From NCBI GenBank assembly GCA_963514005.1, contig OY740791.1, forward strand, positions 52,018,001-52,082,000: a stretch of 64,000 nucleotides of DNA, in the 5' to 3' direction. The notes below the pieces were generated by a model. That model had not been told where the DNA came from, did no database searches, and saw nothing but the letters and a program-made list of their open reading frames with translations. Numbering within the stretch: the first letter of the stretch is position 1; each line of letters starts with the position of its first letter. Source of the DNA: Raja brachyura. Taxonomy: Eukaryota. This document shows, one piece after another, positions 14,798 through 55,522 of this stretch. A program made the position numbers and the translations under genes.

Positions 14798-14925
14798 GTC
14801 TGAAGAAGGGTTTCGGCCCGAAACGTTGCCTATTTCCTTCACTCCATAGATGCTGCTGCACCCGCTGAGTTTCTCCAGCACTTTTGTCTACCTTCGATTT
14901 TCCAGCATGTGCAGTTCCTTCTTAA
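14798..14925 (+). mobile_element. Short Penelope-type repeat with hammerhead core inserted in pseudogene D2 exon
   Basis: gtCTGAAGAagggtttcggcccGAAAcgttg; flanked by acaaggtct/acacggtct; absent in the intact exon. Confidence 0.7.
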
Positions 14926-28439: not shown

Positions 28440-29220
28440 GAGTGCGACTGTGAATCTCAGTGTGTCGCCGTGCTTGGAGCTTTGCCGCGCAGTCTCTGTA
28501 CTCGTTCACCATCAGTCACTTCTCACAAGGCAGGCGACCTCACTGCAGTCTCACTCCATGTAAAAGAGTGGTTTAAAAGGTATCCAGAAACTGAACAATG
28601 TCCTGTAAACTGTGATTTATCACTCGTTCAATCAGTTTGTTCCACTTTAGATTTTACAAGGGCATACAAACTTTATTAACTTCGTTTTGTCTCCTTTATT
28701 TCCCCAGTAACTGAATGGAGGGTGTTTCTCACAGCTAAATGACCAGCATATGCCATTTTTCTACTAGTTTCCAACGAGACAATCTAAATTGAATATTTTT
28801 TTCCCGTTTCGCCGCCAACGTCCGGGTACCGTCTGAGACTATTTAATGTCCCTCGCCATTCTGTTGCCTTCTCTGTTCATTGACTCAATAGCGAGATTTA
28901 GTTGAAACCATTTTACCGAGCAGTAGCAGGTAATTAAGTTAACAATTAAAAAGGCGGAACCAGATGAGTCATTTCGGACAAGGCAAATCGATAGCGGTTG
29001 AATATGGTCCTGAAATCCCAGATTACAGAAGTGACAATATTCCAGCAGCAGAGTCCACCAAGCGAATGTATTTTCCCCGTGTAATTGTGTGCGGCCAATT
29101 CTTAAGTGCTCCTGGGTCAGTAGTTTCAAACTGGCTGCACTCTATACAACATTTGCCAACTACCAATTTACTGATCAAAGTCTAAAACTGCACGTTATTT
29201 CCAAACAGAGAATGCACAAA
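28440..29220 (+). promoter_or_regulatory. Putative proximal promoter/5' region of the Ig receptor gene
   Basis: Lies immediately upstream of the leader exon; AP-1 consensus TGAGTCA near 28965; diverged copies at about 26690-27670 and 7110-8050. Function inferred from position only. Confidence 0.45.
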
Positions 29221-29308
29221 ATGAAGCCGAGGTTTCTCTGCCGCAGTTTGCCAATCGGTTTGATGTTCGGTTTCTTTGTTTTCCTGCTTCGAGCTGTTTC
29301 CACACAGA
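29221..29308 (+). CDS. Exon 1: signal peptide [29 protein letters not shown]
   Basis: Basic N-region plus hydrophobic core; donor CAG A|gtaagt in phase 1; alternative in-frame ATG at 29212. Confidence 0.85.
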
Positions 29309-32300
29309 GTAAGTACTTTCTCTTCGCCGGTCACAATCACCATGTGTTACGTTATCATTGTCCGTGTAAAGCCGCACCCATTGTCAATCTCGCTTTCCTT
29401 TCCACGTCCCTGAATGTGCTGCTGCCTCATAAATCCACGCCATCCTTGCTGGAGCTCAATTTCTGAGCCTTTCCCATCAACTCCCTCTCCCTCTCCCGCA
29501 CCGACACGGTCTTTGTCAAAGTCAGAAATTGCCTCCTGTTAAACTCTCCCTCCCCATCCCGCTCGGTCTCTGCAGCCTTTGACACGGTTGTCCACATCAT
29601 CCTCCCCCAAAGTGGAACTGCTCTCGACTTATCGATCCAGTCGCAGCCCGAGAACCACAAGCAATGTCTTCACTTCACGCTCCCGCAAAGTTCCTTCAAA
29701 ACCGGGTGGAGTTCCTCCACTACTCCAACACAAACCCATATCCCCACCTTGTCTCCCACTCACTCACTCACTCCTCTCTTGTGATGAAATATCACTGGAT
29801 CAGGCCGGGTTATTCCAGACAAACATCTCTTCACAAACTGTGTCTTATTCGCTGGGGTTTCTAAGGAAGATCACCAGTCTGGAATTAAATTAAGATCAAA
29901 ATTAATGATTACAGAAATTGCGTGGAGAAAATGTGTTAATTCTTCATTGTTCATATTTGCAACAGGAAATATAAGTCGAACGTATTTCTTGGATAACGGG
30001 GGCAACATTGTGTTAAACGGACCGGACAATCCTGAGAAATACACTGTTGTTTTCTGGGAATGGAAGCCACACTCTGGGAAGGAAATCGGAAATTTGAATT
30101 TTAGAAGAACGAGGGACTATTGGAGCAAAGAGAAGGCTGCTGGCGGGCGTAAAGTAGACTTGTACCCGGAGATGTATGTGAATCCCTATACCCTTGATCT
30201 GACAATTTATAATAAACCCACATTTAAATGGGCGGGATTGTTCACTTTGGCTCAAACAGAACCGAGAAAGCAAATCCTGAAACAATATGAAATATTTGGG
30301 ATCAAAGGTGAGTGGGTGCAATAAGGATCAATAATGTTTAATTTATCTCTGTAAACATTCTCACCTATAATGAATAGAGATGGCGGGAATTGTGAGACTT
30401 CTTTCACCCGGTGAAAAGAGAATCTCCCAGTAAAACAACTGGGGAAGTGTTTATGTTCATTGATTGTGAAATGATCAGCAGGAGTGAAAATAGTTTGATG
30501 ACTTCACTGGGAACAGCAAATCAATGAATCTACCACGGTAACGTGACCGCGGCAAGGTGGTATGAAACAAATGTCTCCGTGTCATGGCTCTGCCATAGAG
30601 TTCACCTCTTGAGAGCACTCAGATAAACATAGGAGTGGAAATAGATGCAAATAGAACAAAGCATGTGTAAATACAGCAAAGCCTGAATGTTGCCGGTTCC
30701 ACCAGCAGTCCCACGGTGAACAGCCGGTATTTCGCTGCGTCAATGTGACCAGCCACGTGTGTCAGGGGGCTGAAATCACTGGGGGAGAAGTTGTTCTGAC
30801 TTTCATCCAGGCTGATAGCTTTGAGCCCAGGCATTGGACTGTACACACCACTACTCACCCTGAATCTCATTGATCTGTTTTTCACAGTTGAGGCAAGTTC
30901 ACAGCGCCCTCTGCTGGGCAGTGACGTCACACTCAGCTGCACCATCTCCAGACTCTCAGATACAGTCAGTCTTCACTGGAGACCCATGGACTCATCCCAG
31001 CAGAACAGGAGCAACACTGATCAGATCCGCCTGAATAACACGGTCTATCTGATGATCCGACATGTCACAGTGGAGGATGGGAAGTATGTGTGTGAAGTGC
31101 AGGAAAACGGAAAAATCGTTCATACAAGTAACGTCAATTTTAATGTTATTGCGGGTAAGTGTCAATACCTCATATTAGATATTGAACATACACTTGTACC
31201 ATTGGTGCTTATTATAACATCATGTGTGCACCCCGTGAAGAATTGTAGTTCGTGGCCAAAAGCTCTCTTGTACAAAATGCTTCAGTGTTCATGGAGAAGC
31301 TTCCAGAAAGACACAAGTTGCTGGAGTAACACAGCGAGGCAGGCAGCATCTCCGGAGAACATGAACATGTGACATTATGGGTCAGAACTCTTCCTCAGAT
31401 TGGCCATCCTCTCCTCTTCCCTCGCTGACTCTTCTCACTGAGTCCTGCTGCTGTTTGAAGTGATTCCAGCTGCTCCAGACTCGTGCTTCAGATCAGCATT
31501 CTGCTGGGAGCAGGACCTGCGGAAGAGGGAAGGGTGGGGAATCAATGGGTGTGAATGGGAGAGGGGTGGTGGGAATAATGGGAACGAAGGTTGGGATTGG
31601 AGCCAAAGAGTGGAGGGAGGCAGTTGGTGGACAGAGGAATGTGACAGAAAGTCGGGTAGGGCTGATGTTTGCAGCATGCTGGTTCTCTATGAGGGTGAGT
31701 GAGATGGTCAGGAGACGTTCACCATTTCCACAGGAGAGTCACTGGGATGCCAGACCTGCTCATTATTGTGTAAAAAGTGCAGGAAAATGAAAACATGGTT
31801 CAATCAAGTAAAAGAGATTTTACTGTAAACGAAGTAGACACTTGTATCACGGTACTTCTTGTAATGTTATGCATGTGCCCTGTGAAGAACTGTGGACAGT
31901 GAATAACTACTCTCCAGTTCAAAGTAACATTAGCAAATTTGCAATCAACACAAAGATGGATGGCAGTGTGAACTGTGAGGAGGATGCTATGAGAATGCAG
32001 GGTGACCTGGACAGGTTGGGTGAGTGGGCGGATGCATGGCAGATGCAGTTTAATGTGGATAAATTTGAGGTTATCCACTTTTGGTAGCAAAAACAGGAAG
32101 GCAGATTACTATCTAAATGTTGTCACGTAGAGAGAAGGGGAAGTACAATGGTATCTGGGGGTCCTTGTTCATCAGTCAATGAAAGTAAGCATGCAGGTAC
32201 AGCAGGCAGTGAAGAAAGCGAATGACATGTTGGCCTTTATAACAAGAGGAGCCGGGTTTGGGGCAAAGAGGTCCTCCTGCAGTTGTATAGGGCCCTAGTG

Positions 32301-35300
32301 AGACCACACCTGGAGTATTGTGTGCAGTTTTAGTTCCCTAATTTCAGGAAGGACATTCTTGCTATTGAGGGAGTGCACCGTAGGTTTACAAGGTTAATTT
32401 GCGGGATGGCCGGACTGTCATATGCTGAGAGAATGGAGCGGCTGGGCTTGTACACTCCGGAGTTTAGAAGGATGAGAAGGGATTTTATTGAAACATATAA
32501 GATTATTAAGGGTTTGGACATGCTAGAGGCAGGAAATATGTTCCCGATGTAGGGGGAGTCTAGAACCAGGGGCCACAGTTTAAGAATAAGGAGTAAGCCA
32601 TTTAGAACGGAGACGAGGAAACACTTTTTCTCACAGAGAGTTGTGAGTCTGTGGAATTCTCTGCCTCAGAGGGCGGTGAAGGCCAGTTCTCTGGATACTT
32701 TCAAGAGAGAGATAGATAAGGCTCTTAAAGATAGTGGAGTGAGGGGATATTGGGAGAAGGCAGGAACGGGATACTGATTGGGAATGATCAGCCATGATCC
32801 CATTGAATGGCGGTGCTGGCTCGAAGGGACAAATGGCCTACTCCTGCACCTCTTGTCTATTGTATATTATTTAATGTCTAAAATGTTGCAATGATCCGGG
32901 AGAAGTTTCCAGAAAGTCTCTCTGTGGAGCAGCTGCCTCCTTGTCACTGTGTGACAGACACACAACACAGGAGTGATGATGTATTTCTGTAACTATTGTT
33001 CAGTAAAGTATTTTGTCAGTTTAACTTGCCCTAACTATCCTGAGACTGAGATACTGATACAGGGCTCAAGTCAAAATGTCAGATAGAAAGTGTCATCACC
33101 ATGACAACCAATAGCACTTGTTGCTCACACTCACACTGGGGGTCCCGGTGCACACATCAGCACTGAACAATAATCCGTCCCCCTCCCCTCACTGAACCTT
33201 CACTCCAAGAGTGGTGTTGCTTGAAGTGATTCCAGCTGCTGCAGACTCAGGCTTCAGGTCAGCATTCATCTGGGAGCATGACCTGGGGAAGAGAGAAGGC
33301 CAGGGAATCAATGGGTGTGAATGGGAGAGGGATGGTGAGAATGATGGGAATGAAGAGAGGGGAAGAAGCGATCCACTTGAAGTCCCCACACATGCGTCCT
33401 CTGGGTGGCTTCTGTCCACAGCCTGAACCTGCACCACCTCTTGCAGACTGACAGAGAGATTCACCACCCGGGCCGCTCTAGGGAGTCTCCGGGAGGTTTC
33501 ATTCCATCCCGGGAGATTCCCGGACAGTCCAGATGTGGGGGTGAACTTAATGTTGAAATGTAGAGTGGAATATCCAAACTTCACTGCAATTTTCTGCCAT
33601 ACAGGACATTTTATTTTATAAAGATGTGATGAGTTTTGTGTGGCATTCATGAAAGATGGTACATTTGAAATGTGATCAGCTGAACCAAACAGCACTGATG
33701 TTTATGAATATGGTTGAGAATCTATCTTTGGCACGGTAACTGTAATACTGAAAGGAGTATTTCTTTCTGTCTTTCTGATACAGATCTATATAACAGGGGA
33801 TACACACTTTACCGCTCTAGCACAGATCTCAGTGAACTTCACCTGGTTTGTTCTGATATTCATGTATATTCCTCTGCTGAATGGACCTGGAAATCTCGTC
33901 GCCTTCAACAACAGCAGAAAGTAATAGCATCTGTTGTAGGCTCTCAGCCCATCAATGTCAACAGGACCTACTTCCGGAATCGACTGATGAACTCAGTGAA
34001 ACGCTTCAATGGCAAGGATTTCATTGTGAGGATTGTACCGATTTTGTTTCAAGATGCCGGAGTTTACAAATGTTCAATCGGAACATATCTATTTCCCACC
34101 ATTGATCTAATAACAGTGAAAGGTAGGAGACAGAATGCGGCCACTGTTTTCACTGATGAATTAATTATTAAAAATGTAAACAACCTGCTTGTTTCCACAG
34201 TCACAGCTGAGCCGTCTGATGCAGTGACTGAGGGAAACACCGTGACCCTGGCCTGCTCTGTGTCTCACGTCACTGAGTCAATGAGACTGGTTTGGATCAA
34301 TGGTGATGGCAAAAGTGTTGGAGAAAAGACACTGACCGTGGAAGAGAAATCATATAGTCTGGTTATTCAGAAAGCTGAGAGGGACAGAGGGAACTGGAGA
34401 TGTGGTTTGTTTCATCAAGACCTGCCCCGGCTTTTAGTCCCGTATTATCAGGAGCCCAGTGGTAAGCGACTTAGGGTTTGCTCTCCATACTTAGTCATGA
34501 TTGAGTTTTGATGTCCTGAAATTTTAAAGTGGAATTTATTCTTCTGGTTTGTGAGTGGTCTAACTCTGTTATGAACAATTACTTCTCACGTTTCAAATAA
34601 AACATCCCGCACCCCCCCCCCCCCCCCCCACTTCATTGTGCACGCATTTATCCCACCACCCAGCTACCCTATTCCCTTCCCTTCCTCTTTCCACTCATCT
34701 CCCACCCTTTCCAATTACACAATTTCCTTTTTATGTCCTTGCCCCACTACCACCCAAATCCCTCCCTCTTTTACGGATCTGACAACCTTCGGTCTCCATT
34801 TCACTCCTCGCTTTTGTCATTATCTCCATCCATCTACCAATCACCATTCCCCACCTGTATCCACCCATCACTCACCATGCTTTGACTTATGCCTACTTCC
34901 CTTTCCCAGCATTCACTCTCCAATTCCATCAGTCTGAAAAAGGGACGCGACACAATACGTCATCATTCCATTCCCTCCACAGATGCTGCTTGACTCACTG
35001 ATTTTCTCCAGCACTTTGCATTTGATCAGTATTCCATAACCTGCATTTTCTTGTGTCTGCGTGGAAGGATACCCACTGGTCAGCATTGGTGGATTGCTGC
35101 AGAGGGCCTGTTTCCATGCAGTTCCAGGATGATGAATTATAATGTACAACTTAGTAAAGATTCTTCTCTTTCCAACAGGATGTGGAGACTCAATTTACTT
35201 TTTCCATCAGGAAGGCAACTTTGTATTGAAAGGACCAGACAGTCCTGGAAATGGCCCCATTGTCTTGGAATGGAGGCCACACTCAGGGCGACAAACCACA

Positions 35301-38300
35301 AAGCGATTGGCCACTTTTAACAAAGAAGATCAGCAGTTGGCCGTACAATGGAGTGATGAGTACAATCTCCCAGACATTTCCCAGAGGATGCATGCAGACT
35401 GGCGTACCCTTAATCTGAGGATCAAGAAGCCCACCTTTGAAGTTGCGGGACTGTTCACCTGGACTCAAACAGAGCCCAGTGGGAAAATACTGAGACAGTG
35501 GGAACTATTTGGGATCAAAGGTGATAGTCATAGTGTCACATAGCACTGAAACGGGCCCTTTGGCCCAATCCAACCATATTGACCAACTGACCATGTAAAT
35601 GTCCAATTTGCCTTCATTTGGCCCTTAAACCCTAAACCTTTTTTTCTATGTACGTGTTTAAATGTCTTTTAAGTGTTGTTGTACCTGCATCAACAACTTT
35701 CTCTGCTCGATCTTTCCATAAAGTATGTTCATGTACCACTCTCTTTATCAAAACTTGCCCCTTATATTAAGGGGTGTATCAAACCTGTCCCCTCTCACCT
35801 TAAACATGTACTATCTAGTTTTTTTGATTCCCATACCCTAGGAAAAAGGCCCTGTGCATTTAGTATAGATACGCCTCTCATGATTCACCCTAATATGATC
35901 ACCCCTCAGTAAAAGACATCCAAGAAAAATAATCTGTCTGAAGAAGGGTCTCGACCTGAAATGTCGCCTATCTATGTTCTCTAGAGTTGCTTCTTGATCC
36001 GCTGAATTACTCCTGCATTTTATGTCTTTTTATGTATTAACCAGCATCTGCCGTTCTGTGTTTCTCCTGAACTAAAAAATTCCTACCTGGAAGTGTTGAT
36101 GTGGGAGACGAGGGGGATGAGAGGGACACGTGGTCACTACAAGGAAGTGTTGATGACATCACTGAGCACGCAGCGCAACATTCGGCTGACTGTCTGTTTG
36201 CAGGAAAACGTCAATTCTGCCCACAGTAGTTCAGAAATCTGGTGGGGAACTGAACCACACGTCATGTGTCTGTTTCCACAGTTGAGGCAGACTCACCGAG
36301 GCCAGTAATGGGCAGTGACATCACCCTCAGCTGTACCATCTCCAGACTCCCAGATACCATCAGTCTTCACTGGAAACCAAGAGGCTCATCTCAGCAGAAC
36401 AGGAGGAACAACACTGATCAGATCCGTCTGAATAACAACGTCTATCTGATGGTGCAACACGTTGGAGCAGGAAATCCCAATCTGTACACATGGGAAGCGC
36501 AGGAAAATGGCTCCATTGTTCTCACTGGAGACATCAATGTTGAAGTGGATCAGGGTGAGTCCAAAGCTGCCTTGCAGCAGGTATTAAACAGTTCTTGATA
36601 TCAAACTGTTCCACATATTGTATGGTGAGCACTGTCTCCACCCGTGGGCTTTCACTGCAGGATGTGGACATTGCCTTTTCCCTGGGATATGGTGTAAATA
36701 TAAAATGGTGGCACTAAAGTTGATGAAGCCACACAGGAGAATCAAGGGATTAATTTCAATTCATCTGCATGAATCAAAGTGAATAATATCCAGTGGTGGA
36801 AATAACATCTAGTTTTCAGTGTATAACAGAACAGAAAAATATGAACTAATTTTACTTCGGAGTCACGTGAGTGACTACGTGAAGAAGCCCTGCCTGGCGC
36901 TGGACCGGCATTACGTCGACGCTATCGGTAGAGGAAGAGCTGCAGAGCGCAGCTCCAACACAGCGGTAGGGAAACGGCCCGCAGGTAAGTAAAATAATTT
37001 TACTTCCAGGGCGTTTTCTAAAACTCCGCAGGCTGGTGGGTAAACCAGGAGGAGTTAAATTAAAATATATATATTTTTTAAATCGCGGGTAAAACGTGCG
37101 TCCCGGGGTGTAGAAGAGTCGGGACAGCAGATTATTGCGGAGCCGGTTCCGATACCAGTGGTATTAAACAGTTCTTGATATCAAACTTGCAGCAGGTATT
37201 AAACAGTTCTTGATATCAAACTGTTCCACATATTGTATGGTGAGCACTGTCTCCACCCGTGGGCTTTCACTGCAGGATGTGGACATTGCCTTTTCCCTGG
37301 GATATGGTGTAAATATGAAATGGTGGCACTAAAGTTGATAAAGCCACACAGGAGAATCAAGGGATTAATTTCAATTCACCTGCATGAATCAAAGTGAATA
37401 ATATCCAGTGGTGGAAATACCAGTTAATGAGCCTTTGGTTGCTCCACAAACAAAAACTTTGAAAACCCAGTACCTAAAATGTAAAAGAAAAGCTTGAAAG
37501 GCCTAAGGTTTCTGAAAGATCCTGAAAGGAAAGCCTTTTGGCTCAGAATGGATCAAATGGAGAAAATAATCCAAACAATAATCAACCAAAGGTCTAAGAA
37601 CCCAGAATATTCCCAGGCAGCCCCTGAGGGGGTTCCATATCATGAATATGGTGCCAGCTTGAATTGGGAATTGAAACTCCAGTGCCCGGGATTGGGCTGG
37701 AGGAAGTCTCCTTGAACAAGTTTCAGGAGTACCAGGGCTGTATGAGACTGACCCTGAAAGTGGTGTTTGCGGTCAGAAGTACCCACCACAATACAAATAT
37801 GTTGATCCAGGTGTGTCTGATGTGGCATAAAGTTTGTTATACCTGGAGAAGGCGGTGAGGCCATGGAAGGAAACCTGGCGGCCAATATTAATTATATGTC
37901 TCTCACCTGCCTCAAGAAGCTGTTATGGTTGAGACAGCAGATTTGGATTAAAACACCTATTAATTGTACCTCACTGAAGGTACCTATGGTGAATCCGGCT
38001 ATTTGGGCGCCAATGTCATCAAGGATGCGGGCGCAGGAATTACGATTCAAAGAATCCGCAAGCTAATTCGGCTGGCATCACTGTCTTTTGGAAGACAAGC
38101 TGGAAGGTTGTGGAATGACCAAAGTTCAGAACCATATGTTGGTTTTATTCTGCAACTCATTTTTTGAGATAAATTATATGAGAAAGATTGCCATTCGGCA
38201 TCTTTTACATCCAAGATTTGCAAAGGGTTGTGCAGGGCAAGCAATGTTCAAGCACTTAGTTATTTGTTCGGAGAAAATCTGTCTAAACAAATTAAAGAAA

Positions 38301-44300: not shown

Positions 44301-47300
44301 TATAAAAGAAGTGCTGAAAATCCGTTCACTCTCCAACCCGCTGTAGCAAAGGATGTGGTCCATAGGAACTCCCATCATCCTAGCCGCTGACGTGGATGCA
44401 GCCTTAGCTATAAGACTGGACCCGTTGTGCTGTTACAAGTGCCATAAGCATAACCATATAATATGTAGTTATCCAGAGAGTGCCCCAATATTGGTGTCCA
44501 TCCTCGAAGCATAGTAAATTTTATGCCTAGGTCCCATGTATGAGTGGATCTGGTCTAGGGGAAAATATTAATACCCCTCATCAGATTGATACCAGAGGGT
44601 GTGATCCTATACGCAGGTGATCACCCTCTCGGTCCAGGTTGGTAGGTAGGGCACTCCTGCAAATTTAATGGCATTATAGCTCAAACCTTCATGGAAAGAA
44701 GGGTGGCCAGAACTCCTGCAATCCAGTGATGGTGGCCGAGTCATATGAAGTGTTTGTTCTGAAGAAGAAACACTCCCATCTGCTGACATATGTCAGTGCT
44801 GTCCCTGGTGGACTCCCTCACGACGAGTGATGACATAGATCGTCCTGTCGGAGTATCCGAAGTCCAGAATGGCCTGTTCAGAAACAGCATCAATAGGTTA
44901 ATGCGATCATGGCACGGATAACTTACCCGTCACAGGGGTGCCAACAGGCCCGGCCGTTTGAGGATCCGGAAGCAGTGTTCTGCGGCCATCTTTGTACTGC
45001 TGGGGACCATGGTTGGGTAGGCCAATCGGGAACCCGAAATACCAGTTGCGGAGTCTATTAAATTTTTGTAAGACCCGACTGATGAGGCAGAAGGGGGGAA
45101 ATGCTTAGCAAACAATCCCCCCAATGCAGCGAGAAACATCCATCGCTGCTGGCCCCGGTCCTGATCCAACATCCATTCATTGTTGTCGTTGAATTGCGTG
45201 ACCTGGTGTTCGCCACCGTATTTAGTTTACCTGAAAGGTAAGTGGCTGAGATCCAAATCTCTCTATCCAGACACCAGTGCTAGTTGTTAAAAAGGCAATT
45301 CATCACATGATATCGATTTTATTCCACACAAAAGATTAATATAGGCCACCACTGTGGTATTATAATTTGTAACCATACATGCAACTGGTGCATATCTAAG
45401 CAGTAGGCCCCCGGGTTCCACGAATGCTTCCAGTATTTCTAGATAATTAATCCCTAGTGCTCCCAACAGGGTTAAATCTTGTGCATTCCATCTGCCACCA
45501 CAACAGTGGTGGTATTAGCTGCTCCCCACCTTTCACACTGGCATCAGTCTGTAATGTAACCGAGGGATTTATGATAGTGATGGATTTGGAACAGAATTGA
45601 GCATTTCCCATCCACCAATTTAATTCAACTCTTGCCTTTTCTAATAACTTCATAGGCCTGTTGAAATGGTATGACTTTTGAGAGCTATAATTTTAGCTCT
45701 TTGTAGGTTTTGATAATGTAGTGGTCCGAATTGCACTGCGGGAAAGCAGCCACTATCTTCCCAATACCATGGCCACCTACCGTATGGATGGATCCCTGAT
45801 GCCAGTAAGGCTTCTGCAAGCTTCTACCAAGTCCACCACCTTGTTCGGTGGTAAGGTGGTAGACATTTGCACCGAGTCAATGGTGAACCCCAAGTAATCC
45901 ATGGTAGTAGAGAGTTCCAACTTTGATTTATCTGGATGTATGATGAACCCCAGCTTTTGAAAGAGATGTTTTATGGCTAGAAACTGCCAATGTAGCCGTT
46001 TCCAATTATCCCCGACAATGAGGATATCATCAAGATAGGCCATAACAGTATGATTTTGTTTCCTTAAATAGGCCAAAGCTGGTAATTTGTTGAACAGCCT
46101 GGGTGCTGATGATAACCCATTGGGTAAGGCTATATATTGCCATAATTGTCCCATCCAGATAAATTTAAGGTATTCCCTATGATCCTTGTGTATTAGTACT
46201 GAATAGTATGCATCTTGAGGTTAATGCATGCCATGTAGTACCCATAGCTATAAGCTGGCTACTGTGTCCATTTTGAAATGAACATACTGAACAGAAGTAT
46301 TCAGTTCGGTCAGGTCTATGATTATGCGGCATCCGCCATCTTTTATTTTTGGTAAATATATTAGATACGAACTCCTGTGATTCTCTCAATAACCCCTCTT
46401 AATAGTTCAGCATGGCCCGCCGTTCTTTCTTTGTGAAAATATAACTTTCGGCTATGCGAATGCTGGACCGGGGCAGGGAGTTCGTAAATGAATTAATTTT
46501 ATAGCCCTGAATACTTCCGAATATGTAAGGATCAGAGGTAAAAGTGCAACCGGTCTCCCCCATAAGATGAATTTTAGACATATGATGTTCCTGGGGGAGG
46601 CAGATCCACCTACCTCCAAGGTATTGCCGGCGTAGTGTCCAATACCACCGTTATTTCTTCTGTTTGAGTTGATGCGTTGTAGGGGTGGCGCATTTTCCAA
46701 GAAGGCCGGGCTGGGCCATGGCCTAAAAAGGCTGTTGTGCAGGTGGGCCGGCCTTCGAGCTTTGGGTGTGTAGGGGTGCTGTAGCTGTTGGCAGTGCGCT
46801 TGGAGGTACTGGGTACCTTATCAGCCCTATGGCCTCTTTGTCCAGGTCTTTCACCTGTTTGGGGAGCTCCGCACAGCAGATATGGTGGTTGAGCGTACCT
46901 GGTTTGCATAACCCCGCAATTTGGGGTGAATTGCTCTTCCTGCAGTTATTTTCAACTGTGTTCACAGTAAGGCCAGAGCATCCTTTTCCTACCGGTAGCT
47001 CTATACCCACCGCAGTACTGGCACTGCCGAAATACCGGCGGTCAAAAGCTTCAGGATCCTCTGAAGTTTGACTCCTTGCCCTCTAATCGTAGGGCTCATT
47101 ATCCCCCAAATAGGGTATTTACCGCGGGAACAATAGCGAGTACAATTATCAGGAGCAAAGTACTTATCAGCTATAGCATAGATGGCTGCTCCTGAAGCTG
47201 GTTTGTAGTCATATAATTAAACTAGCTGCCAGCTTAGGGTGGATAGGTAACCTTTTTAGAAGGAACTGCATGTTACTTACCATATCCAGAACTCTTCACT

Positions 47301-50300
47301 GCACCCCTGACACTGTTGGTTTGTTCAGCCAACTCCCCCTCTTCGGGTCAGCCCAGTTCTGACCCCCAATGCTCCCCTCCGAAGAGGGTGAGACATTTAG
47401 GCAGTCCATAATAGGATCCTGCCGTGGGCCTGCGAAGAGGCCCACTGTGACCCTGCCCCTGCTAAAGCAGGTCACGCTGGAGCAATTGCTCCACCATCCG
47501 CTCCATGCGGGTAAGACGACCTCCGTTGCTGCAGCGAACGGGGTGTCCTCGGGACTGGACCCAGCTGAGTCGACAGTCCCGATCGGCTTCCAGGTGGATT
47601 TACCGCCTGTCCGTGGCGAACCAGTCCCGGTGGATTTACCGCCTGTCCGTGGCGAACCAACCGCCCTCCCGGGCGCAAGTCGGGAGCTGCAGGTAGCACC
47701 TGCAGCTCGAGAAACGAACGGGTGGTTTTACCGCCTGTCCGTGGCGAACCAGCAGTCCTCCCGGGCTGAATTCGGGAGCTGCAGGTAGCACCTGCAGCTC
47801 GGAGAAAAAACGGCACGCTGCTGGCTGCGGTCTATAGCAGCAGCTCTTGCCGTTACTCTCGCCGCGCTCACCACTCTGGTGAGTCTTACCGTTCCATCGC
47901 TGGAGGAGCCCCGCTCCTCCCGACTGTCGCTTCCGCATGCGAACGACGATATGTCGCGCATGCGTGCTGGCGGGGTCTTCACGTAGTCACTCACGTGACT
48001 CCGAAGTAAAATTAAAAATAAAACATTATAATTTAAACATGTGAAATAAAGTACCAGAGTAAAAAGAGGCTACCAACTTTTGGTTGTTGAGTAGAGCTAC
48101 AGCTCGTGGGAAGAAATTCTTTATATGTCCGGCTGCGGCAGCTTTGATAGTCCGGACTCACCTGCCGGTGGGAAGTACTTCAAACAGTTTGTGGCCAGGG
48201 TGAGAGTGGTCAGAGATGATCTTACCCACTAGCTTCCAAGTCCATGCAGTGTGCAGTTCATCAATGGGGGGAAGGTTGCAGCCAACAACATTTTTGGCTG
48301 ATTGAATGATGCACGGCAATTCAGGATGTCTTGCTTGGCAGCTGAGCCAAACCAGACCACGATGGAGAAGGTGAGGACACACTCTATGATGGTAGTGTAA
48401 AACTGGGCCATCATTGCCTGCGGCAGGTTGTGTTTCCTCAGCTGCTGCAGGAAGTACATCCTCTGTTGGGACATTTTGACTGTGGAGTCGACGGTGGCCT
48501 CCCAATTAAGGTCGCTGGAGATGATGATGATGATGAAGAAATTAAATGATTCCACAGTTGTGACTGTAGTGTTGTTGGAGATGAGTGGTGGAAGGGGAGG
48601 GGGAGCTCTCCTAAAGTCTACAATCAATTGCACTGTTTTAAGAGCACTGAGCTTCAGGTTGTTGCGATGTCACCAGGACACCAGCTGTTATGATTAGGGT
48701 GACTTGGACATTGTGCTGAAGTAAGCATTCAGGTACAGCAGGCAATGAAGAAAGCAAACGGCGTGCTGGCCTTCATAGCGAGATGATTTGAGTATAGTAC
48801 CAAGGAGATCCTACAGCAGTTGTATGGGGCCCTGATGAGACCGCACCTGGAGTATTGTGTGCAGTTTTGGTCTCCTAGTTTGAGAAAGGATATTTGTGCT
48901 ATAGAGGGAGTGCAGCGTAGTTAACCAGGATAATTACTGGAATGGTGGGACTGACATATGATGAAAGAATGGATTGACTGGGTTTATATTCACTGTAATT
49001 TAGAAGGATGAGAGGGAATATTATAGAAACATATAAAATGATAAAGGGATTGGGCAGGATAGATGCAGGAAAAATGTCCCCCATGTTGGGGAGTCCAGAA
49101 CCAGGGGTCCCAGCTGACATCCCAGAGCTGAGGGTTTGTCCCTGTGGAAACTCACAACATTGTATCTCGGCTTATGTGGAAATTTAATTATTTGTTCCCT
49201 GACCCTCTTTTGTAGGTTTACACAGTAAGACGTACACAGTTTATCGCTCAGTCACAGATCACAGTGAACTTGACCTAATTTGTGAACCTTCTCTTGAGCT
49301 CAGTGAAACCAAATGGACTTGGAGATCACAACATTTCCCGAATCAAGAGAAGGAAATAGCTTCTTCTCACAGGTCTGAGCCGATCTATGTCAACAGGAGC
49401 TACTTTGGGAATCGACTGGAAACCACAGAGGGAAATATCAATGGCAAGAATTTCCTTGTGAGGATTGTCCCGGTGCAGTTTAAAGATGCTGGAGTTTACA
49501 CATGTTCCAGGGGATCAAATATATATGTGAACATTGAACTAATCACAGTTACAGGTAGGAGACTGGATGTTACTACTTTCAAGAATTAAGTTACTGGTGT
49601 CGAGTTTCTACGCTGAGTACAGACTGCTATGTCAGCAGAAATTCCCTAGTTTGAAGAATTATTTTACCTCCAGAGCTTCCTCTTCAACGTGTTTGTATTT
49701 TGCTGAAACTAAAATCTGCCCTAAACCAACATTATTGGGAAGCACATCAAAATGTTATTTTCATTAATTTTGCATAAGAGAGGGAACATGAGAAAATGTG
49801 ATTCACATAGGTGCAAATGGATCAGGTGCAAATGAGCTTCTATCGAAAATATGTTAAAAATCATTCAACTTCTTTTAACACTTTCCCCAAGTTTCTTTGA
49901 CCCCAAATGACACATCCTAATTTTTGAAGGCTCACTGGAGGCTTAAAGCTGAGTTTATTTTGTGGAATTTATCGATTAATATTCACCTGGATGAGTGTTG
50001 TGGCCAGCACCTTGACCAGAGGCAATGGTGTGGGCAGTGGTTGCTCTTTGTACAATGAGTTCAAAACTGTTGTGAATGATAATGAAAAAGACACTTGGAG
50101 AGGTACATGGATGGGAAAGGTGCAGAGGGATATGGGCCAAATGTGGGAAAATATTTTTGATGGAGCATCTTGGTTGGCATGGATGAGTTGGACTGAATGG
50201 ACCGAATTGTATTGTGTTGTAGGACTATGCCTCAAACTCTTTTTGTGCAATACAATTTTACACACTTAGAACACCAGATACTGGTGTCAAAGTACTGAGA

Positions 50301-53300
50301 AAAACACAACACAATCCAGACAAAATTCATTGTTTTACGATTTTCTTCTTTCCACAGTCACAACTGAACCATCTGGCGCAGTGACTGAGGGAAGAAAGAT
50401 GGCACTGACCTGCTCTGTGTCTCATGTCACTGAGTCAATGAGACTGGTTTGGATCAATGATGAAGGCAAAGTTGTAGAGGAGAAAAATCTCATGCAAACA
50501 AAGCAGGAGGACAATTCTTTGCAGCTGATTATTGCAAAAGTAGATGGAATAAGAAGGAACTGGACATGTTGTTTGTTTCATCAAAGCACAGCCAAGGTTT
50601 TCATTCCATATTGTCTGCAGGTGAACAGTAAGTTTCTTAGCTTCTGCTCTTCGTGATCTCCGACACCGATTTCTTGTCACTTGTTGCTATTCTTTTTGGA
50701 TAACTTTTGAACATTCCATGACTTACTGCAAGTAGAGCTCAATCACAGACATTTCGTTCAAACCTCTTGTCCATGCCTATAAGGTCACTTCAATTGTAAG
50801 TAGTTCAGGTCTCTGAAGCACATGGGAGCACATGGATCACTACTTCGGCAGACCACCGACTAAGACCTGTGTTGGCGATCACATTGAAGATGATCGTGAA
50901 TTTCATCATCAATGTCGGTCCTTGTTGACAAATGTCTCCAGAGGTATGAAAACTGGTCCAGTAGTATGAAAACCAGTGTGTGACTGTGAACTTTTTTGTC
51001 AGAGGTCTGTATAGTAAGGTGGGCAGCTTTGTGGAAGATCTTTCCCGTTACACCCAAACTGTGCCTCTTAAAGATCACAAAAGTTGTGAAAATCATCTTA
51101 AAAATAGTTGTGCAAATTGTTTCCACTGTCCTGATGCCATAAAACATTACAGCGGTTGTAGCATCCACAGTAACTTCACCAAAGGCTGCCTTGCCAGAAC
51201 AGTAGACGTGAGGGAGTGAATACTGATGTCTTCAACTTGTCTGACCATGATGGCGCAGTGGTTAGGGTCACACACACAAGCCTCTCCATCCTTTGGTCTA
51301 CTTGCAGACTGCTGCTTTTGGGCGTTGAGCTGTCCTTAAAGGGCAGGAGATATCAGTCAGTGAGTGAATAGATTAGTTGGTGAGTGGAATTAATGCACGG
51401 ATCACCATCTCCAATTTTGCACTAAAAACATATGAAGATGTGTTCATTAGGATTGTAATAATAGTGCATTCAACCTCATTGACATCAGTAGGCAATGGTT
51501 ACATGCACAGTACAGTTTTAGTACTTGAAGACCAAAATAGTTTTAGGAGTTGAAAATCGGAATTATAATAATAATCAGCAGGACGGATAGGAACTATGGA
51601 AAGAGGAGCAAGCCAAAGATCCTTTCTTCGAATCTGACAACTATTTTTCATTATAAAACATGAACTCACTTCTTTCTCTTTCCACGGATACTGCTCAAAC
51701 GGCTGAGTATTTCTACCATTTACAGTTTTTGGGCTCCTGGTTAGAGAGGATTGAAGTTCACGGTCAATATCCTCTCTGTTTTCAGCAGTGCTCATTCAAC
51801 TATTGTTCCTGGCTCAGACCATGATGGACATTTGTCCACTGTACAGCTGAATCAGCAACTTTATCAGTCAACCATCAGCTCCCATCTCCTGCATGAGGAA
51901 GTCAGCTGATTGTAACCAAGAAATAGAAACTTGTGTGAATGTTTATAGTCTCTAACTGATGAATACTGAGGGAAGTTGTGGCTCTCTAATCTTTCTGAGT
52001 CAGGTCAATTAATCTGGAAAAAAAAAGACGCAATGTGCTGAAGTGACTCAACGGGTCAGGCGGAATCTCTGGAGAACATGGATAGGTGAGGTTTTGGTCC
52101 CCACCCTACTTCAGACTAAAGGGCTACGACCCGAAATGTCACCTGCGTAACCCGCTGAGTTTCTCCAACACTTTTATTGATAAACTATCATCTTCAGTTC
52201 CATGTGTCTCAGTTAATCTGGATCACAAGTTTAACTCAAGACTTCTGATCTAAATTAGTCAGTGTGGTTAATGCCTGATCATTGGTGGAGCTATTGAATG
52301 ATGTCCATTTATTTTACAAATGGGAACTCTGTGTTTATTATTTTGACAGAGAATTACACTATTATATTCACCATTGTTATAATTATCGGGAGTCTGGCTC
52401 TTCTCCTCGTCAGTATACTGGCAGTGGTGTTGTGTCAAAGAAAGCGCAAGCCTACAGGTAAAGTACATGAAGACATCCTTAATGCAGCACAGATCCTCCA
52501 AATTATCAATGATAATGTTATCTTTGTTACAAGGAGAAAAGAACAGTATCTGGTTGTGCTTATGCTATTGGGAAATTTATTTCAGTCCTTTTGTGGTCAA
52601 TTAAAGCATTATTTATGCAATGCGGATTGTCCTGTCTACCTGCGTTGCCATGGGGAGACTGCTGTATGACTTCAGATGCTGTTCTGCAATGATCTGACCA
52701 CGTGGTGATTGTGTCACCATCCCCTGTGTAAACCATTATCTAATAAACATGCCAGAAGTGCTTTTTGGAGTATAGCTTATGTAGTCATGTAGAAAATAAG
52801 GTCTCCCATTTGCCCTCAATGTGGTCCTATTTACTGAGGGATAAATATTGGCCAGGAGACCAAGGTATCTCCACTGCACTTTGGAGGTTCACGCTCCAAA
52901 ATTGATTGTGTCCCGATAGGACAGAAGGATCTCAGTTGAACAAATAATCTTAATCTGGTGAGGCCGATGCTGCAGCAATCCCACGTGGCAACAGAATTTT
53001 AGGCTCAACTGTATGTTGAAATATTCAAATTTAGGGTTGTGCCTGAGGATTTATTCTGTGTTGTTGAACACACTGATCAGACGGGTATCGGGCTATAAAC
53101 AGACTATCCTTTATTGAAAGCAGTAACTATTAAGTAAACATAAGTGTCTGGTACAACAGTTCATCAAAGTCACTGACACGTGGAATACTCAGTTCTTAGA
53201 GCTTCCCTTAATTTCTATAAATTACAAGATTTTTTCCATATAAAAAAAACATTCCAATAACTGATCATTAGAAATATAAAATTACATATTGAACGTATTA

Positions 53301-55190
53301 ACTGTATGTGCAATTATAAATTAAATTGCTCCTTTGCTTGTCATTTTGACTTGTGAAAACTCTGCAGTGCAAAGATGCATTTGTCCACTCTTCAGATATT
53401 TTCAACTCTGCTAGGTACCTCCACCTGTTGGTCCTACCTCATTCATGGTCTCCTGTGCCCTCCCACCCATGTTCTGTCCAGAAATGGCTCTATCGTGGAA
53501 TCCATACCGTAACTCAAATCCATGCTCATCCTGTGCCTCATATTGTCAATCATCATCTTCTTGGGCATCCTGTCCATGTAACACATGATCTATCGATGTA
53601 ATTTGAATTCTGTCACTCATTCCCATCATTGCACCACCATTTTATTCACAATATTTTTCCTGAACTGAATCCAAATTCTCGGATTATCAAATAGAATTTA
53701 AACCTGTGCCTCTGGACTATTAATCTCAAAGAGTCTTGGATTAATATCCAGTTAGCCTATGACAATCCAAACGTACGTCAAAAGCAAATAAATAATGTAC
53801 CCATTAACAGGAGTCAGCACAACACATTTGAAAATAAATTGGAGAGTAACTCATCACCAAGTCCCAATCTGGTAATGTTGGGAAAAATTAATGACATATT
53901 GTGTATCATATTTCATATAAAGTATCATATTTGTGGAAAACAGAGTTAATGGAATCTCTATTGTGTTTTGTTAAATATGTGAAATTAAATTGTATGTAAA
54001 ATCATGAGGGGAATAGATAGGGTGAGGTGCGCAGAGTCATTGACCCAACATAAAGTAATCAAATACTAGAAGACATAGGTTTAAGTTGAGAGGGGGGAGA
54101 TTTCATTGAAACCTGAGTGGCAGCTTTTTCACTCAGATGATGGTGGTTATATGGAACAAGCTGAAAGAGAAGGTGGTTGAGGAAGGAACTATAACTGCAT
54201 GTAAAAGACACTTAGGCAGGTACATGAACCACCGGGTGGCACCGCAATGGCTGCCTCGCCAACAGTCTGTCTCGTCCTTTTTCTTCTTTGTTGTATTTCA
54301 GTATGTGTTAAATGGATGTTTTAGTGTTCTTTAGCTTTGTTTTATGAGGGGGGGGCAGGGTGGGGGAAACTTTTTTAAATCTCTTACCTCGACAAAGATG
54401 CATTTTTTTCCATATCGTATCTCCATCCGCACTGTGGCCAAACAGCGAGGTGCTGGCGGCCTCTTGCTGGGGATTGACTTTGGGAGCTCCAACCGCGGGA
54501 GCCTGCAGGATTTAACATTATGGAGCTGGTGGTCCCATTGTCGGGGATCGACCTTGAAGCCCCAACCGTGGGAGACTGCGGATTTAACATTGTGGAGCTC
54601 ATGGTCCCTTGGTTAGGGAGGCTTCGGGAGGCTCAAGCCGCAGGAGCTTCGACCACCCTGACCTGGGGGCTTCAATTATTGGCTGTGGGAGCTTCTATCA
54701 TCCCGACTGTGGTTGGTTTGACTGACCCGACCACGGGAGAATAAAGAGTGAAGAAGATTAGACTTCATTGCCTTCCATCACAGTGAGGAATGTGGAGAAT
54801 CCGCTGTGGTGGATGTTTTTATTAACTTTTATGTAGTTGTGTGTCTTGTTGCTTTTTTAGTGTGACTATAATAAATTGTACCTTAATTGGTGCACATGAC
54901 AATAAAATACATTTGAACCTTTGGTTAAGGTATTCGGTCAATTGCAGGCAAATGGGACTAGCTTGGATGGGGCATCTTGGATGGTATAGACTGGTTGAGC
55001 CAAAGGACCCCGTTCTGTGCTGTATGACTCTACGAATCTTTCACTTTATAAAAGGTGTAAACATTTTAAATGGTGTCCTCTCTCTGAACAGGTTTAGGCA
55101 ATCAAAGACAGAAAGCTCCACGATCAAAAAGTGACACAGAAGGTGAATCTCACCTTTATGGCAACCCTGATGAAATTCAGCAGATGGAAG
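29221..55190 (+). CDS. Spliced gene (11 coding exons in window, 3' incomplete): type I membrane receptor with 8 Ig domains, CD4/LAG-3/G6F-related IgSF member
   Basis: Exons 29221-29308, 29966-30307, 30888-31154, 33784-34122, 34201-34461, 35179-35520, 36282-36554, 49216-49554, 50358-50627, 52350-52457, 55092-55190. All are flanked by AG/GT and all introns are phase 1. Internal exon lengths are multiples of 3, and the 2728 nt joined by hand have no stop. The family assignment (V-C2 alternation, WxC, YxN tail) is less certain than the gene structure. Confidence 0.88.
29370..29760 (+). mobile_element. Old L2-like LINE RT remnant in intron 1
   Basis: Decayed SAAFDTVVH motif (LSAAFDTVDH type); paralogous copy at 10490-10755. 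Confidence 0.65.
29966..30307 (+). CDS. Exon 2: Ig D1, V-like domain with no cysteines
   Basis: tttgcaacag| ... ATCAAAG|gtgagt, 342 nt; IVLNGP (B strand), FWEWK (C strand), LDLTI (E strand), AGLFTL (F strand). Confidence 0.88.
30888..31154 (+). CDS. Exon 3: Ig D2, C2-type
   Basis: ttttcacag| ... GCGG|gtaagt, 267 nt; [18 protein letters not shown]. Confidence 0.9.
31765..31832 (+). pseudogene. Remnant of an extra D2-type exon 3' end inside intron 3
   Basis: aagtgcaggaaaatgaaaacatggttcaatcaagtaa ([11 protein letters not shown]) matches the D2 end [11 protein letters not shown]; followed by a second copy of the intron-3 start sequence. Confidence 0.6.
31917..32870 (+). mobile_element. CR1 LINE, 5'-truncated, in intron 3
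   Basis: Highly similar to 1917-2868; absent from the paralogous pseudogene intron near 15155. Confidence 0.95.
33784..34122 (+). CDS. Exon 4: Ig D3, V-type
   Basis: gatacag| ... AAAG|gtagga, 339 nt; LHLVC, WTW, DFIVRI, DAGVYKC. Confidence 0.9.
34201..34461 (+). CDS. Exon 5: Ig D4, C2-type with WxC motif
   Basis: tttccacag| ... AGTG|gtaagc, 261 nt; [19 protein letters not shown]. Confidence 0.9.
35179..35520 (+). CDS. Exon 6: Ig D5, paralog of D1 lacking canonical cysteines
   Basis: ttccaacag| ... ATCAAAG|gtgata, 342 nt; shares VLxGPD, EWxPHSG, KPTF, AGLFT, QTEP and FGIK with D1. Confidence 0.88.
36282..36554 (+). CDS. Exon 7: Ig D6, paralog of D2 (F-strand Cys replaced by Trp)
   Basis: tttccacag| ... 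CAGG|gtgagt, 273 nt; [21 protein letters not shown]. Confidence 0.88.
36849..38919 (+). mobile_element. DIRS1-type retroelement, 5' part only (left terminus, decayed gag, start of RT)
   Basis: Begins ATTTTACTTCGGAGTCACGTGAGTGACTACGTGAAG; similar to 38920-40905; ends in RT at LSSAPR. Confidence 0.88.
38920..43647 (+). mobile_element. Full-length but inactivated DIRS1-type tyrosine-recombinase retrotransposon
   Basis: Inverted termini; internal complementary region at about 43310-43420; gag-like 39134+; RT (IDLKDA, YLDD) 40364-41130; RNase H ([12 protein letters not shown]); methyltransferase-like ([10 protein letters not shown]); YR 42256-43060; many stops and frameshifts. Confidence 0.95.
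43752..48012 (-). mobile_element. DIRS1-type retrotransposon, degenerate, different subfamily
   Basis: Same terminal motifs in reverse; ICR at about 43978-44090; RT ORF 45777-46154 ([14 protein letters not shown]); LQTDAS near 45545. Confidence 0.92.
47592..47800. repeat. Short tandem repeats in the gag region of a DIRS element
   Basis: ttaccgcctgtccgtggcgaacca x3 and cgggagctgcaggtagcacctgcagctc x2. Confidence 0.85.
48040..48690 (-). mobile_element. Rex1/Babar-like LINE fragment
   Basis: [27 protein letters not shown]; same family as 11447-12465. Confidence 0.88.
48697..49110 (+). mobile_element. CR1 LINE fragment
   Basis: Similar to 2200-2570 ([13 protein letters not shown]). Confidence 0.88.
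49216..49554 (+). CDS. Exon 8: Ig D7, V-type paralog of D3 (absent from ORF track)
   Basis: ttttgtag| ... ACAG|gtagga, 339 nt. Hand translation is open: [36 protein letters not shown]...[18 protein letters not shown]...IELITVT. Confidence 0.9.
50358..50627 (+). CDS. Exon 9: Ig D8, C2-type with WxC, paralog of D4
   Basis: tttccacag| ... AACA|gtaagt, 270 nt; [27 protein letters not shown]. Confidence 0.9.
50760..51250 (-). mobile_element. Decayed RTE-type LINE fragment
   Basis: [24 protein letters not shown] resembles the RTE RT C-terminal F.YLGS.LS...IDDEI..R. Confidence 0.6.
52350..52457 (+). CDS. Exon 10: transmembrane helix and basic stop-transfer
   Basis: ttttgacag| ... ACAG|gtaaag, 108 nt; [25 protein letters not shown] followed by QRKRK. 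Confidence 0.88.
53995..55035 (+). mobile_element. Old CR1 3' end interrupted by a non-autonomous LINE-tailed repeat (about 54230-54920)
   Basis: [13 protein letters not shown] motif; the inner element ends in gtgcacatgacaataaa, like the Rex1 tails elsewhere in the window. Confidence 0.55.
55092..55190 (+). CDS. Exon 11: first cytoplasmic exon [33 protein letters not shown]
   Basis: ctctctgaacag| ... GAAG|gtaatg, 99 nt, phase 1-1, open in the frame set by the TM exon; contains YGN. Confidence 0.75.
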
Positions 55191-55522
55191 GTAATGTGAA
55201 AACAAGAAGCATAAAAGAAAATTCATAATTGTTGTGTCCATTTTCTCATGCCAATTCTGTCTGCCATTAGTAATTTAAAAGTACACTTAAAACATAGAAT
55301 TGTGCTTTTATTTTGTTATAAACAAATTGTTGGTCTCATAAATAAGGAACATTCCTAAACTGAGAGCATGGGATGGTCCGATCACACACGACCCAAAGAT
55401 CACAATTGTGCCATCAAACGCTTACCCACCATAGGACAGAGTTCAGGGTAAAGTGCCTGTCCCAGAGGTTGCTGTCCGACATCCAGATGACATTATGTGT
55501 CAAGTGAAGCTGGCTGAGGTTT

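Follow-up and report, generated by a model that had tools for sequence, protein, structure and literature searches.

An eight-Ig-domain receptor gene of the skate Raja brachyura with a predicted doubled CD4/LAG-3-like unit

CD4 and LAG-3 are commonly taken to form a family of two members with one gene each, and G6F-like, a CD4/LAG-3-related thrombocyte marker that serves as a collagen receptor in zebrafish, is regarded as a loose relative of the pair. The hallmarks of CD4 and LAG-3 include an ectodomain of four immunoglobulin (Ig) domains in the order V-C2-V-C2, a WxC motif in strand F of the second and fourth domains (D2 and D4), and rod-like pairs of V and C2 domains that share a strand, with strand G of the V domain running on into strand A of the C2 domain (Takizawa et al. 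2023, PMC10768021). Their cytoplasmic tails are marked by Cx(C/H) in CD4, which binds LCK, and by a single-exon (F/Y)xxL(D/E) in LAG-3 (PMC10768021). Zebrafish G6fL has four Ig-like domains, a transmembrane (TM) segment, and a short tail that combines a Grb2-type YxN motif with an ITAM (immunoreceptor tyrosine-based activation motif; PMC3528668). Here we describe a gene for a receptor with eight Ig-like domains (D1 to D8), located in a 64-kb stretch of contig OY740791.1 of the skate Raja brachyura, hereafter referred to as the window, and compare it with these systems.

We consider it likely that the skate gene encodes an inhibitory receptor whose ectodomain consists of a V-C2-V-C2 unit present twice, that it belongs to a separate branch with CD4/LAG-3-type architecture, and that the unit was doubled once, before sharks and rays split. 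The predicted proteins of its relatives are already public; what is new is the description of the family, its fold, and its doubling. In the literature on Ig receptors of cartilaginous fishes, we found no papers describing the family, a CD4/LAG-3-type fold, or an ancient doubling.

Structure of the eight-domain gene

The locus lies on the forward strand between 29.2 and 55.2 kb and is an intact gene within the window for a type-I receptor with eight Ig-like domains (Table 1). An earlier note, made from the letters of this stretch, had joined 11 phase-1 exons into 909 open codons and had read D1/D5, D2/D6, D3/D7, and D4/D8 as pairwise paralogs with identical exon lengths in the D1/D5 and D3/D7 pairs, all of which was confirmed. 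The 11 exons have GT-AG borders, each is in phase 1 on both sides, and the polypyrimidine tracts are strong at all of them. Counted from the ATG at 29221, they total 2728 nucleotides (nt), enough for 909 open codons with one base left over, and an exon-by-exon phase check found no stop in any exon or split codon. A further in-frame ATG three codons upstream, at 29212 (MHKM...), agrees with the start of skate relatives, and the N-termini of two of these, P0203 and P0216, read MHKMRPRFLC. Within the window, tblastn gives identities of 42% for D1/D5, 64% for D2/D6, 51% for D3/D7, and 56% for D4/D8 (E 1e-20 to 1e-35), and the exons of D1 and D5 (342 nt) and of D3 and D7 (339 nt) are indeed equal in length. 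Pfam matches (Ig, V-set, or I-set) were obtained for D2, D3, D4, D6, D7, and D8, with V-set on D3/D7 and Ig/I-set on D2/D4/D6/D8; D1 and D5 had no Pfam match.

The receptor has a signal peptide and an uncharged TM helix, and the two tail exons of the window hold, in turn, a YxN motif (HLYGNP) and another tyrosine (KYMSV). The TM exon is 82-86% identical to the TM segments of P0210 and P0229, exon 11 is 90% identical to P0229, and exon 12, placed by tblastn and splice sites, is 85% identical to the tail of Leucoraja P0229 (E 4e-10). Position 55190 is a splice donor and not the end of the gene; if it were left unused, translation would stop at 55226-55228. The next two tail exons of the relatives carry the motifs I-H-Y-G-S-I and V-I-Y-A-Q-I, and scanning the window after exon 12 as far as base 64000 revealed no such exons resembling ITIMs (immunoreceptor tyrosine-based inhibitory motifs). 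The gene therefore extends past the end of the window, and at least two further tail exons are expected beyond base 64000 from comparison with the relatives.

The RNA check that the earlier note had proposed for the splice junctions was successful for relatives, with spliced D4-D5 and D5-D6 contigs in their RNA, and yielded no reads of the exact gene. Four runs were compared with positions 30850-36600: X1, which is DNA-like, X18, X19, and X20. An exact GT..AG join from D4 to D5 (34461>35179) occurs in X20, with 57 letters on the shorter side, and an exact GT..AG join from D5 to D6 (35520>36282) occurs in X18, X19, and X20, with 231, 128, and 28 letters on the shorter side, respectively. Neither join is found in X1, and X20 has coverage on exons D2-D6 but none on unique intron sequence. 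These contigs show that such genes are spliced as predicted and that both four-domain halves are present in one RNA. For D6-D7, which are separated by a 12.6-kb intron, contiguity is present in the relatives' proteins P0203 and P0163.

Table 1. Exons of the eight-domain gene and other features of the window
Feature	Position	Length	Strand	Remarks
Exon 1, start codon and signal peptide	29212..29308		+	phase-1 donor CACAGA/gtaagt
Exon 2, D1	29966..30307	342 nt	+	V-like, cysteine-free
Exon 3, D2	30888..31154	267 nt	+	C2-type Ig, Cys pair; F strand YVC (not WxC)
Exon 4, D3	33784..34122	339 nt	+	V-set, canonical Cys pair spaced 74 residues
Exon 5, D4	34201..34461	261 nt	+	C2-type, F-strand WxC = NWRC
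Exon 6, D5	35179..35520	342 nt	+	D1 paralog, without intradomain Cys pair; one Cys at D4-D5 linker
Exon 7, D6	36282..36554	273 nt	+	D2 paralog, F-strand Cys replaced by Trp (YTW)
Exon 8, D7	49216..49554	339 nt	+	V-set paralog of D3 (V-set E 6.5e-7); after 12.6-kb intron
Exon 9, D8	50358..50627	270 nt	+	C2-type D4 paralog, WxC = NWTC
Exon 10, TM helix	52350..52457	108 nt	+	uncharged; juxtamembrane Cys, basic stop-transfer CQRKRK
Exon 11, first tail exon	55092..55190	99 nt	+	YxN motif HLYGNP; phase-1 donor TGGAAG/gtaatg
Exon 12, second tail exon	61799..61876	78 nt	+	KYMSV, phase 1/1; tblastn to relative tail and splice sites
D3-D4 intron	34123-34200	78 nt	+	open, in frame, 26 codons
Decayed partial copy of D1-D3 exons	10913-11250, 14645-15032, 16098-16373		+	69-80% identity
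Decayed DIRS-like retroelements	39060-42885		+	
Decayed DIRS-like retroelements	45780-46154, 56114-56779		-	
Open reading frame in D6-D7 intron	48232-48633		-	Pfam ALKBH8_N, E 8.8e-11
High-copy repeats, intronic	31800-32960, 35840-36030			

Searches were carried out with single exons, with database proteins of the relatives, or with the stretch from D3 through its short downstream intron to D4, which is naturally open. A 133-nt contig of the RNA-like X20 runs colinearly through this intron (34106-34235), which suggests that a relative retains the intron or has a longer, alternative linker. A join in X20 from 34075 to 34197 was considered as the D3-D4 junction and set aside as uninformative, since the site is mismatched, only 24 letters lie on one side, and unknown letters lie between. 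In each of the four runs, which come from three organisms, the summed contig depth at two intronic segments is 1e4 to 4e6; these are high-copy interspersed repeats common to those species.

Beyond the eight-domain gene, the window contains only a pseudogene fragment and repeats. The fragment, about 18 kb upstream, is a decayed partial copy of the D1-D3 exons: the D1-like exon is frameshifted; about 90 nt interrupt the D2-like exon, which also contains a stop and has lost the Trp of strand C; and the D3-like exon breaks off ahead of its F-strand Cys. Decayed DIRS-like retroelements, with open reading frames for a reverse transcriptase (RVT_1, E 2.7e-10) and a protein of the tyrosine-recombinase/phage-integrase type (E 3.5e-6), occupy both the D6-D7 intron and the one that precedes exon 12. 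The ALKBH8_N match in the D6-D7 intron is probably part of a repeat-borne open reading frame and not a host gene.

Relatives and the age of the doubling

An exhaustive HMMER search of 1.84 billion representatives with the open D3-intron-D4 query gave 216 matches, 27 of them below E 1e-30. The leading matches are skate, ray, and shark proteins, from species of Amblyraja, Rhinoraja, Leucoraja, Mobula, Pristis, Scyliorhinus, Heterodontus, and Heptranchias, and nearly all are named 'uncharacterized protein'; weaker four-Ig relatives occur in sturgeon, bichir, eels, tarpon, and cyprinids. A profile built from ten four-Ig members matched 85 chondrichthyan proteins, those of the chimaera Callorhinchus included, and among ray-finned fishes a profile search matched only sturgeon, paddlefish, and bichir relatives along with CD22-like proteins. 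The few descriptive names are all automatic: 'obscurin-like' (nurse shark V9NJF3), 'VCAM1-like', 'CD276 homolog', and 'CEACAM5-like'. The sources thus give no proper name, in line with the failure of the earlier note to recognize a named gene. The best identities per domain, 77-92%, are to Leucoraja, Amblyraja, and Rhinoraja proteins, the closest being Leucoraja P0203, with 77-90% in each domain, P0229, with about 86-90% over D8, TM, and tail, and Amblyraja P0163. In several species, the LOC numbers run consecutively, which points to tandem clusters of family genes. Judged by these comparisons, the skate gene is a member of a multigene family, apparently clustered in tandem, that is found throughout cartilaginous fishes and has four-domain relatives in ray-finned fishes.

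When the domains of the window are mapped onto the fetched proteins, four domain types (a to d) appear in a fixed order, as abcd in 47 proteins and as abcdabcd in 30. Longer members include a protein of S. canicula with 1710 amino acids and about 15 domains, and an eel protein with about 20 domains. In maximum-likelihood trees of each of the four domain types, D1-D4 of the window group with the unit-1 copies and D5-D8 with the unit-2 copies of sharks and rays, and both groups roughly track the species tree, although these trees are quick searches on about 100 columns in which the deep forks are unresolved. A second signature resides in the 'b' domain of unit 2, where 28 of the 29 aligned shark and ray relatives have YTW in place of YxC, together with a distinct E-F loop. 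Because the substitution is so widely shared, the loss of the Cys in D6 is an ancient conserved trait rather than decay. The domain trees and the D6 signature together indicate a single doubling before the shark/ray split. The earlier note had presented the ectodomain as twice the usual size; with eight domains in about 30 shark and ray relatives and an ancient doubling, this is instead a trait of the family.

The two units have diverged to different extents. The mean pairwise identity within the family is 50.5% for D1 vs 72% for D5, 70% for D2 vs 78% for D6, and 57% for D3 vs 63% for D7, which makes D1 the fastest-evolving domain. By this measure, the membrane-distal tip is diversifying and the proximal unit is conserved.

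Two 'uncharacterized' proteins of the lamprey Lethenteron reissneri, P0063 and P0068, match the D3-D4 query with E about 1e-12. Each has the WxC two or three times, along with an ITAM-like pair, YxxL...YDNL, in the tail, and both could bear on the 'CD4-like' molecule proposed for lampreys.

Fold, tail motifs, and competing readings

Genuine CD4 (coelacanth, and CD4-2 of Betta) and LAG-3 (birds and sturgeon) are among the matches of the exhaustive HMMER search, with E-values of 3e-10 to 1e-5. When the ten-member family profile was aligned with a CD4+LAG-3 profile by hhalign, the two were collinear across all four domains (probability 99.9, E 1.6e-32, 375 columns), and the WxC of D4 fell on the WxC of D4; a CD22-like control, built on a shallow alignment, gave E 1.3e-9 over 196 columns. 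Among PDB sequences, the best single stretches found with the family profile are in human LAG-3, where the end of D3 and D4 align with the end of D1 and D2 of LAG-3 at 26-28 bits and with the end of D3 and D4 of LAG-3 at 22.5 bits, both pairs in register and with the WxC aligned. The ten-member profile was needed for this result: a single-sequence phmmer search of PDB with D3-D4 gave generic Ig matches, a two-sequence profile of D4+D8 matched only generic Ig domains there (titin, DIP, PD-1) with no preference for CD4 or LAG-3, and a D1+D5 profile had no PDB match at E up to 10.

A structure prediction, which had been suggested as a check, supports the same kinship. P0216 is a four-Ig relative from Rhinoraja with 68-90% identity to D1-D4 of the window (75% in D1), and its AlphaFold2 model, computed from an alignment of 40 sequences, has a mean predicted local distance difference test score (pLDDT) of 85.1 and a predicted template modelling score (pTM) of 0.80. 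Continuous strands at residues 135-150 and 340-354 span both V/C2 junctions. In a Foldseek search of 350,542 PDB chains, the top four matches of the model are LAG-3 (8dgg, E 8.9e-19), CD4 (1wio), LAG-3 (7tzg), and CD4 (7t0r). In VIA-align, CD4 structures score Z 17.4, 17.4, 16.0, and 14.8 over 315-329 residues from all four domains and the LAG-3 ectodomain scores Z 14.0, where unrelated Ig proteins reach a plateau of about 12-13. As domain pairs, CD4 D1D2 and LAG-3 D3D4 superimpose on D3D4 of the model with root mean square deviations (rmsd) of 3.1-3.8 A (3.3 A over 166 residues for CD4 D1D2; 3.3 A with Z 13.3 and 24% identity for LAG-3 D3-D4), vs more than 11 A for pairs from antigen-binding fragments (Fab) and T-cell receptors (TCRs). 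The D1 type, which escapes Pfam, is a V-type sandwich in the model with high pLDDT, matching TCR and antibody V domains with Z about 12 and rmsd 2.3 A. Pfam and, for the D1 type, AlphaFold2 thus bear out the doubled V-C2-V-C2 organization that the earlier note had read, and profiles and model together indicate that, in architecture and fold, the four-domain unit is a homologue of the CD4 and LAG-3 ectodomain, its nearest match among all solved structures.

The family is nonetheless a separate branch with CD4/LAG-3-type architecture and not a CD4 or LAG-3 ortholog. The earlier note had named an F-strand WxC as characteristic of the C2 domains of CD4 and LAG-3; in the skate gene it is present in D4 and D8, whereas D2 and D6 have other residues in its place. 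The CD4 motif Cx(C/H) is absent from the TM exon, from exons 11 and 12, and from the complete tails of the closest relatives. The LAG-3 motif (F/Y)xxL(D/E) is not matched by YGNP or YMSV of the two tail exons, and the tail is not encoded by a single exon: the window has at least two tail exons, and the relatives lead one to expect about four. We file the family as a separate branch because of the missing WxC in D2/D6, the missing disulfide in D1/D5, the absence of both tail motifs, and the many paralogs, whose tandem arrangement argues against CD4 orthology in particular. Of the original proposal of a cartilaginous-fish receptor of the CD4/LAG-3 lineage, the nearness of the four-domain unit to that lineage therefore stands, and membership in either orthologous group does not.

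The tails suggest how such receptors may work. Just past the TM segment, the window tail and nearly all relatives have a YxN motif, and the complete tails of the relatives combine a YxN of the LYSNV type with an ITIM of the form I(H/Q)Y(A/G)(S/T)(L/I)xF and a terminal ITIM, V(I/V)Yxx(V/I). No ITAM was found 3' of the TM exon in the window or in the relatives' tails, which hold ITIMs. Sister genes, by contrast, have a lysine within the TM segment and short, tyrosine-free tails; four-Ig members of this kind are P0009, P0164, P0008, and P0010 (from sawshark, sawfish, and bamboo shark), with the TM sequence GYLLVKLxxAxGL. One of them, P0164, joins a unit-1-like D1 with a unit-2-like D4, which suggests an internal four-domain deletion. 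The combination of YxN and two ITIMs in some relatives with a TM lysine in others suggests paired inhibitory and activating receptors. We propose a model in which D1, fast-evolving, disulfide-free, and membrane-distal, would form the ligand-binding tip, and D5-D8 would serve as a conserved stalk or a second binding platform. As in the homologous skate proteins closest to it, exons past the window would encode two ITIMs; upon ligand engagement, tyrosine phosphorylation would recruit SHP-1/SHP-2, along with Grb2 at the YxN, and lead to inhibition. The sisters with a TM lysine would be the activating counterparts, pairing with ITAM-bearing adaptors.

Several points weigh against the reading of the skate gene as an inhibitory receptor with a doubled CD4/LAG-3-type ectodomain. 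Among the runs on record as RNA, no RNA of R. brachyura or of the exact gene was seen, and the spliced contigs, being 90-93% alike to the window, come from a related species or a paralog and do not show expression of the window copy. The joins D6>D7, D8>TM, TM>tail, and tail>exon 12 are predicted ones, drawn from splice consensus and the relatives' predicted proteins. The fold was predicted for P0216 and not for the joined product of the window, the control for the profile comparison is shallow as stated, and all Ig domains are mutually alike, which makes the profile and fold signal partly generic. In each unit, the WxC occurs in one C2 domain and is missing from the other. In the ESM Atlas, the look-alikes of the eight-domain relative P0203 are CEACAM5/PSG-like (score 0.93) and not CD4. 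The ITIM exons lie outside the window, and inhibitory signalling by the skate gene would be by analogy with its relatives.

An alternative that we regard as tentative, and on balance rather doubtful, is that the family is the cartilaginous-fish counterpart of G6F and teleost G6F-like, and thus a receptor of thrombocytes or other blood cells rather than a lymphocyte immunoreceptor. The fold would be the same as in our preferred explanation, with a different nearest named family and cell type. The earlier note had mentioned this kinship, and it is favored by the language-model look-alikes of the shark four-Ig protein P0039 in the ESM Atlas, where two 'g6f-like' clusters score 0.96 with 193-194 shared features and the look-alikes by structure are g6f-like and CD4, as well as by the YxN that G6F shares, just after the TM, with exon 11 and with the relatives, and by the existence of four-Ig members in the family. 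The link comes from these look-alikes and shared features and not from a sequence alignment. The Atlas result comes with no alignment or E-value; a word-index search with P0039 at E up to 10 returned only the chondrichthyan family; and no G6F-like protein, as recognized by a YxN+ITAM tail, is among the 150 best matches of the exhaustive HMMER search, whereas CD4-2, CD4, and LAG-3 are. Furthermore, teleost G6fL signals by an ITAM, which is split over two exons, unlike the skate family with its ITIMs or TM lysine. Linkage to the major histocompatibility complex is another mark of G6F and G6F-like.

More speculative, and in our view improbable, is an extension of the CD4/LAG-3 reading in which the family is a third ancient branch of that lineage, doubled and expanded into paired receptors, whose distal V domain reads class II molecules of the major histocompatibility complex (MHC) or MHC-like ligands.

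A grouping with CEACAM, Siglec, or another leukocyte receptor of the Ig superfamily, with the CD4/LAG-3 likeness being generic or convergent, has little probability. CEACAM N domains are V-like without a disulfide, as is D1, the twin ITIM tails of the relatives resemble those of CEACAM1 and Siglecs, one NCBI isoform is named 'CEACAM5-like', and the P0203 look-alikes fit. CEA also has the top summed score of the family profile against PDB, but it tops LAG-3 only in this sum, over six weak stretches, none above 21.5 bits, that leave out the F strand of the C2 domain, vs the best single stretches with the WxC in LAG-3. The V-set domains D3 and D7 with their 74-residue Cys spacing make the order V-C2-V-C2, vs a V followed only by C2 (A/B) domains in CEACAM. 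In the Foldseek search, a CEA model ranks 42nd and the CEACAM1 ectodomain is not among the top 50 shown, and the two-domain geometry fits CD4/LAG-3 at about 3.3 A in VIA. The present fold data, themselves from a predicted model, lean toward CD4/LAG-3.

We give equally low odds to the proposal that the eight domains are not one product, and that the locus makes a secreted D1-D4 protein and a separate D5-D8-TM transcript or is an unexpressed duplicate in decay. Reading through the D4 donor (34462-34511, forward strand) adds 16 codons (GKRLRVCS...) before a stop, the Leucoraja RefSeq model P0225 ends in the same read-through peptide, and Rhinoraja P0216 likewise ends directly behind D4; these gene models thus allow for a secreted four-Ig isoform. 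The decayed D1-D3 copy upstream and the lack of RNA of the exact gene could be read as signs of decay. On the other hand, a spliced contig unites D4 and D5 at the predicted GT..AG sites, about 30 relatives have abcdabcd in one chain, the 12 exons are all open and strong in their splice sites, D5 lacks its own leader, and the D6 signature has persisted from before sharks and rays diverged. Skate MDIR, whose Ig domains are of the CD300/TREM/pIgR type (PMC3031540), was set apart by description only, its V domains being unlike those of the skate family, and no MDIR-named protein appeared in the HMMER, profile, and word-index searches with that family.

Comparison with known receptor systems

If the kinship with CD4 and LAG-3 is real, the family offers a new outgroup for dating the origin of MHC class II co-receptors and, for the oldest jawed vertebrates, a candidate innate system of paired receptors. 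A four-domain rod architecture would have been doubled before the shark/ray split and then multiplied into clusters with ITIM tails and with TM lysines; should the distal V domain read MHC, this would amount to a KIR/LILR-like system made from CD4-type rods and would open a view of how MHC co-receptors originated. At a practical level, the family proteins are 'uncharacterized' in RefSeq for more than 20 species, and naming and describing them is useful for annotation.

Of the described molecules, LAG-3 shares with the skate gene the four-domain V-C2-V-C2 unit and, in its membrane-proximal C2 domain, the F-strand WxC. The coding sequence of D1 has no internal intron in shark LAG-3, as in the skate gene (PMC10768021), and inhibitory function would be a further likeness if borne out for the latter. 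The skate gene differs from LAG-3 in having no WxC in D2/D6 and no disulfide in D1, in its doubled ectodomain, and in a tail split over several exons. LAG-3 is also a single gene per genome, vs a multigene family in cartilaginous fishes. With CD4, the likeness lies in the V-C2-V-C2 unit, in V+C2 pairs that form rods with a continuous G/A strand, and in a multi-exon tail (PMC10768021, and the predicted model of the skate relative). In contrast to CD4, the skate family has one C2 domain with WxC per unit, a cysteine-free D1, eight domains, many paralogs, and variants with ITIMs or a TM lysine. G6F-like resembles the skate gene in its four Ig-like domains, single TM segment, and YxN tail, with the difference that the skate gene has the unit twice.

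The family also resembles the paired inhibitory and activating multigene families KIR, LILR, CEACAM, and teleost LITR/NITR, with which it shares tandem clusters, a divergent distal domain, ITIM-bearing vs charged-TM members, and pseudogene debris. However, those receptors differ in domain lineage and order and are built from strings of C2/I-set domains or from single V domains, whereas the skate family appears to be built from V-C2 rods resembling those of CD4 and LAG-3.

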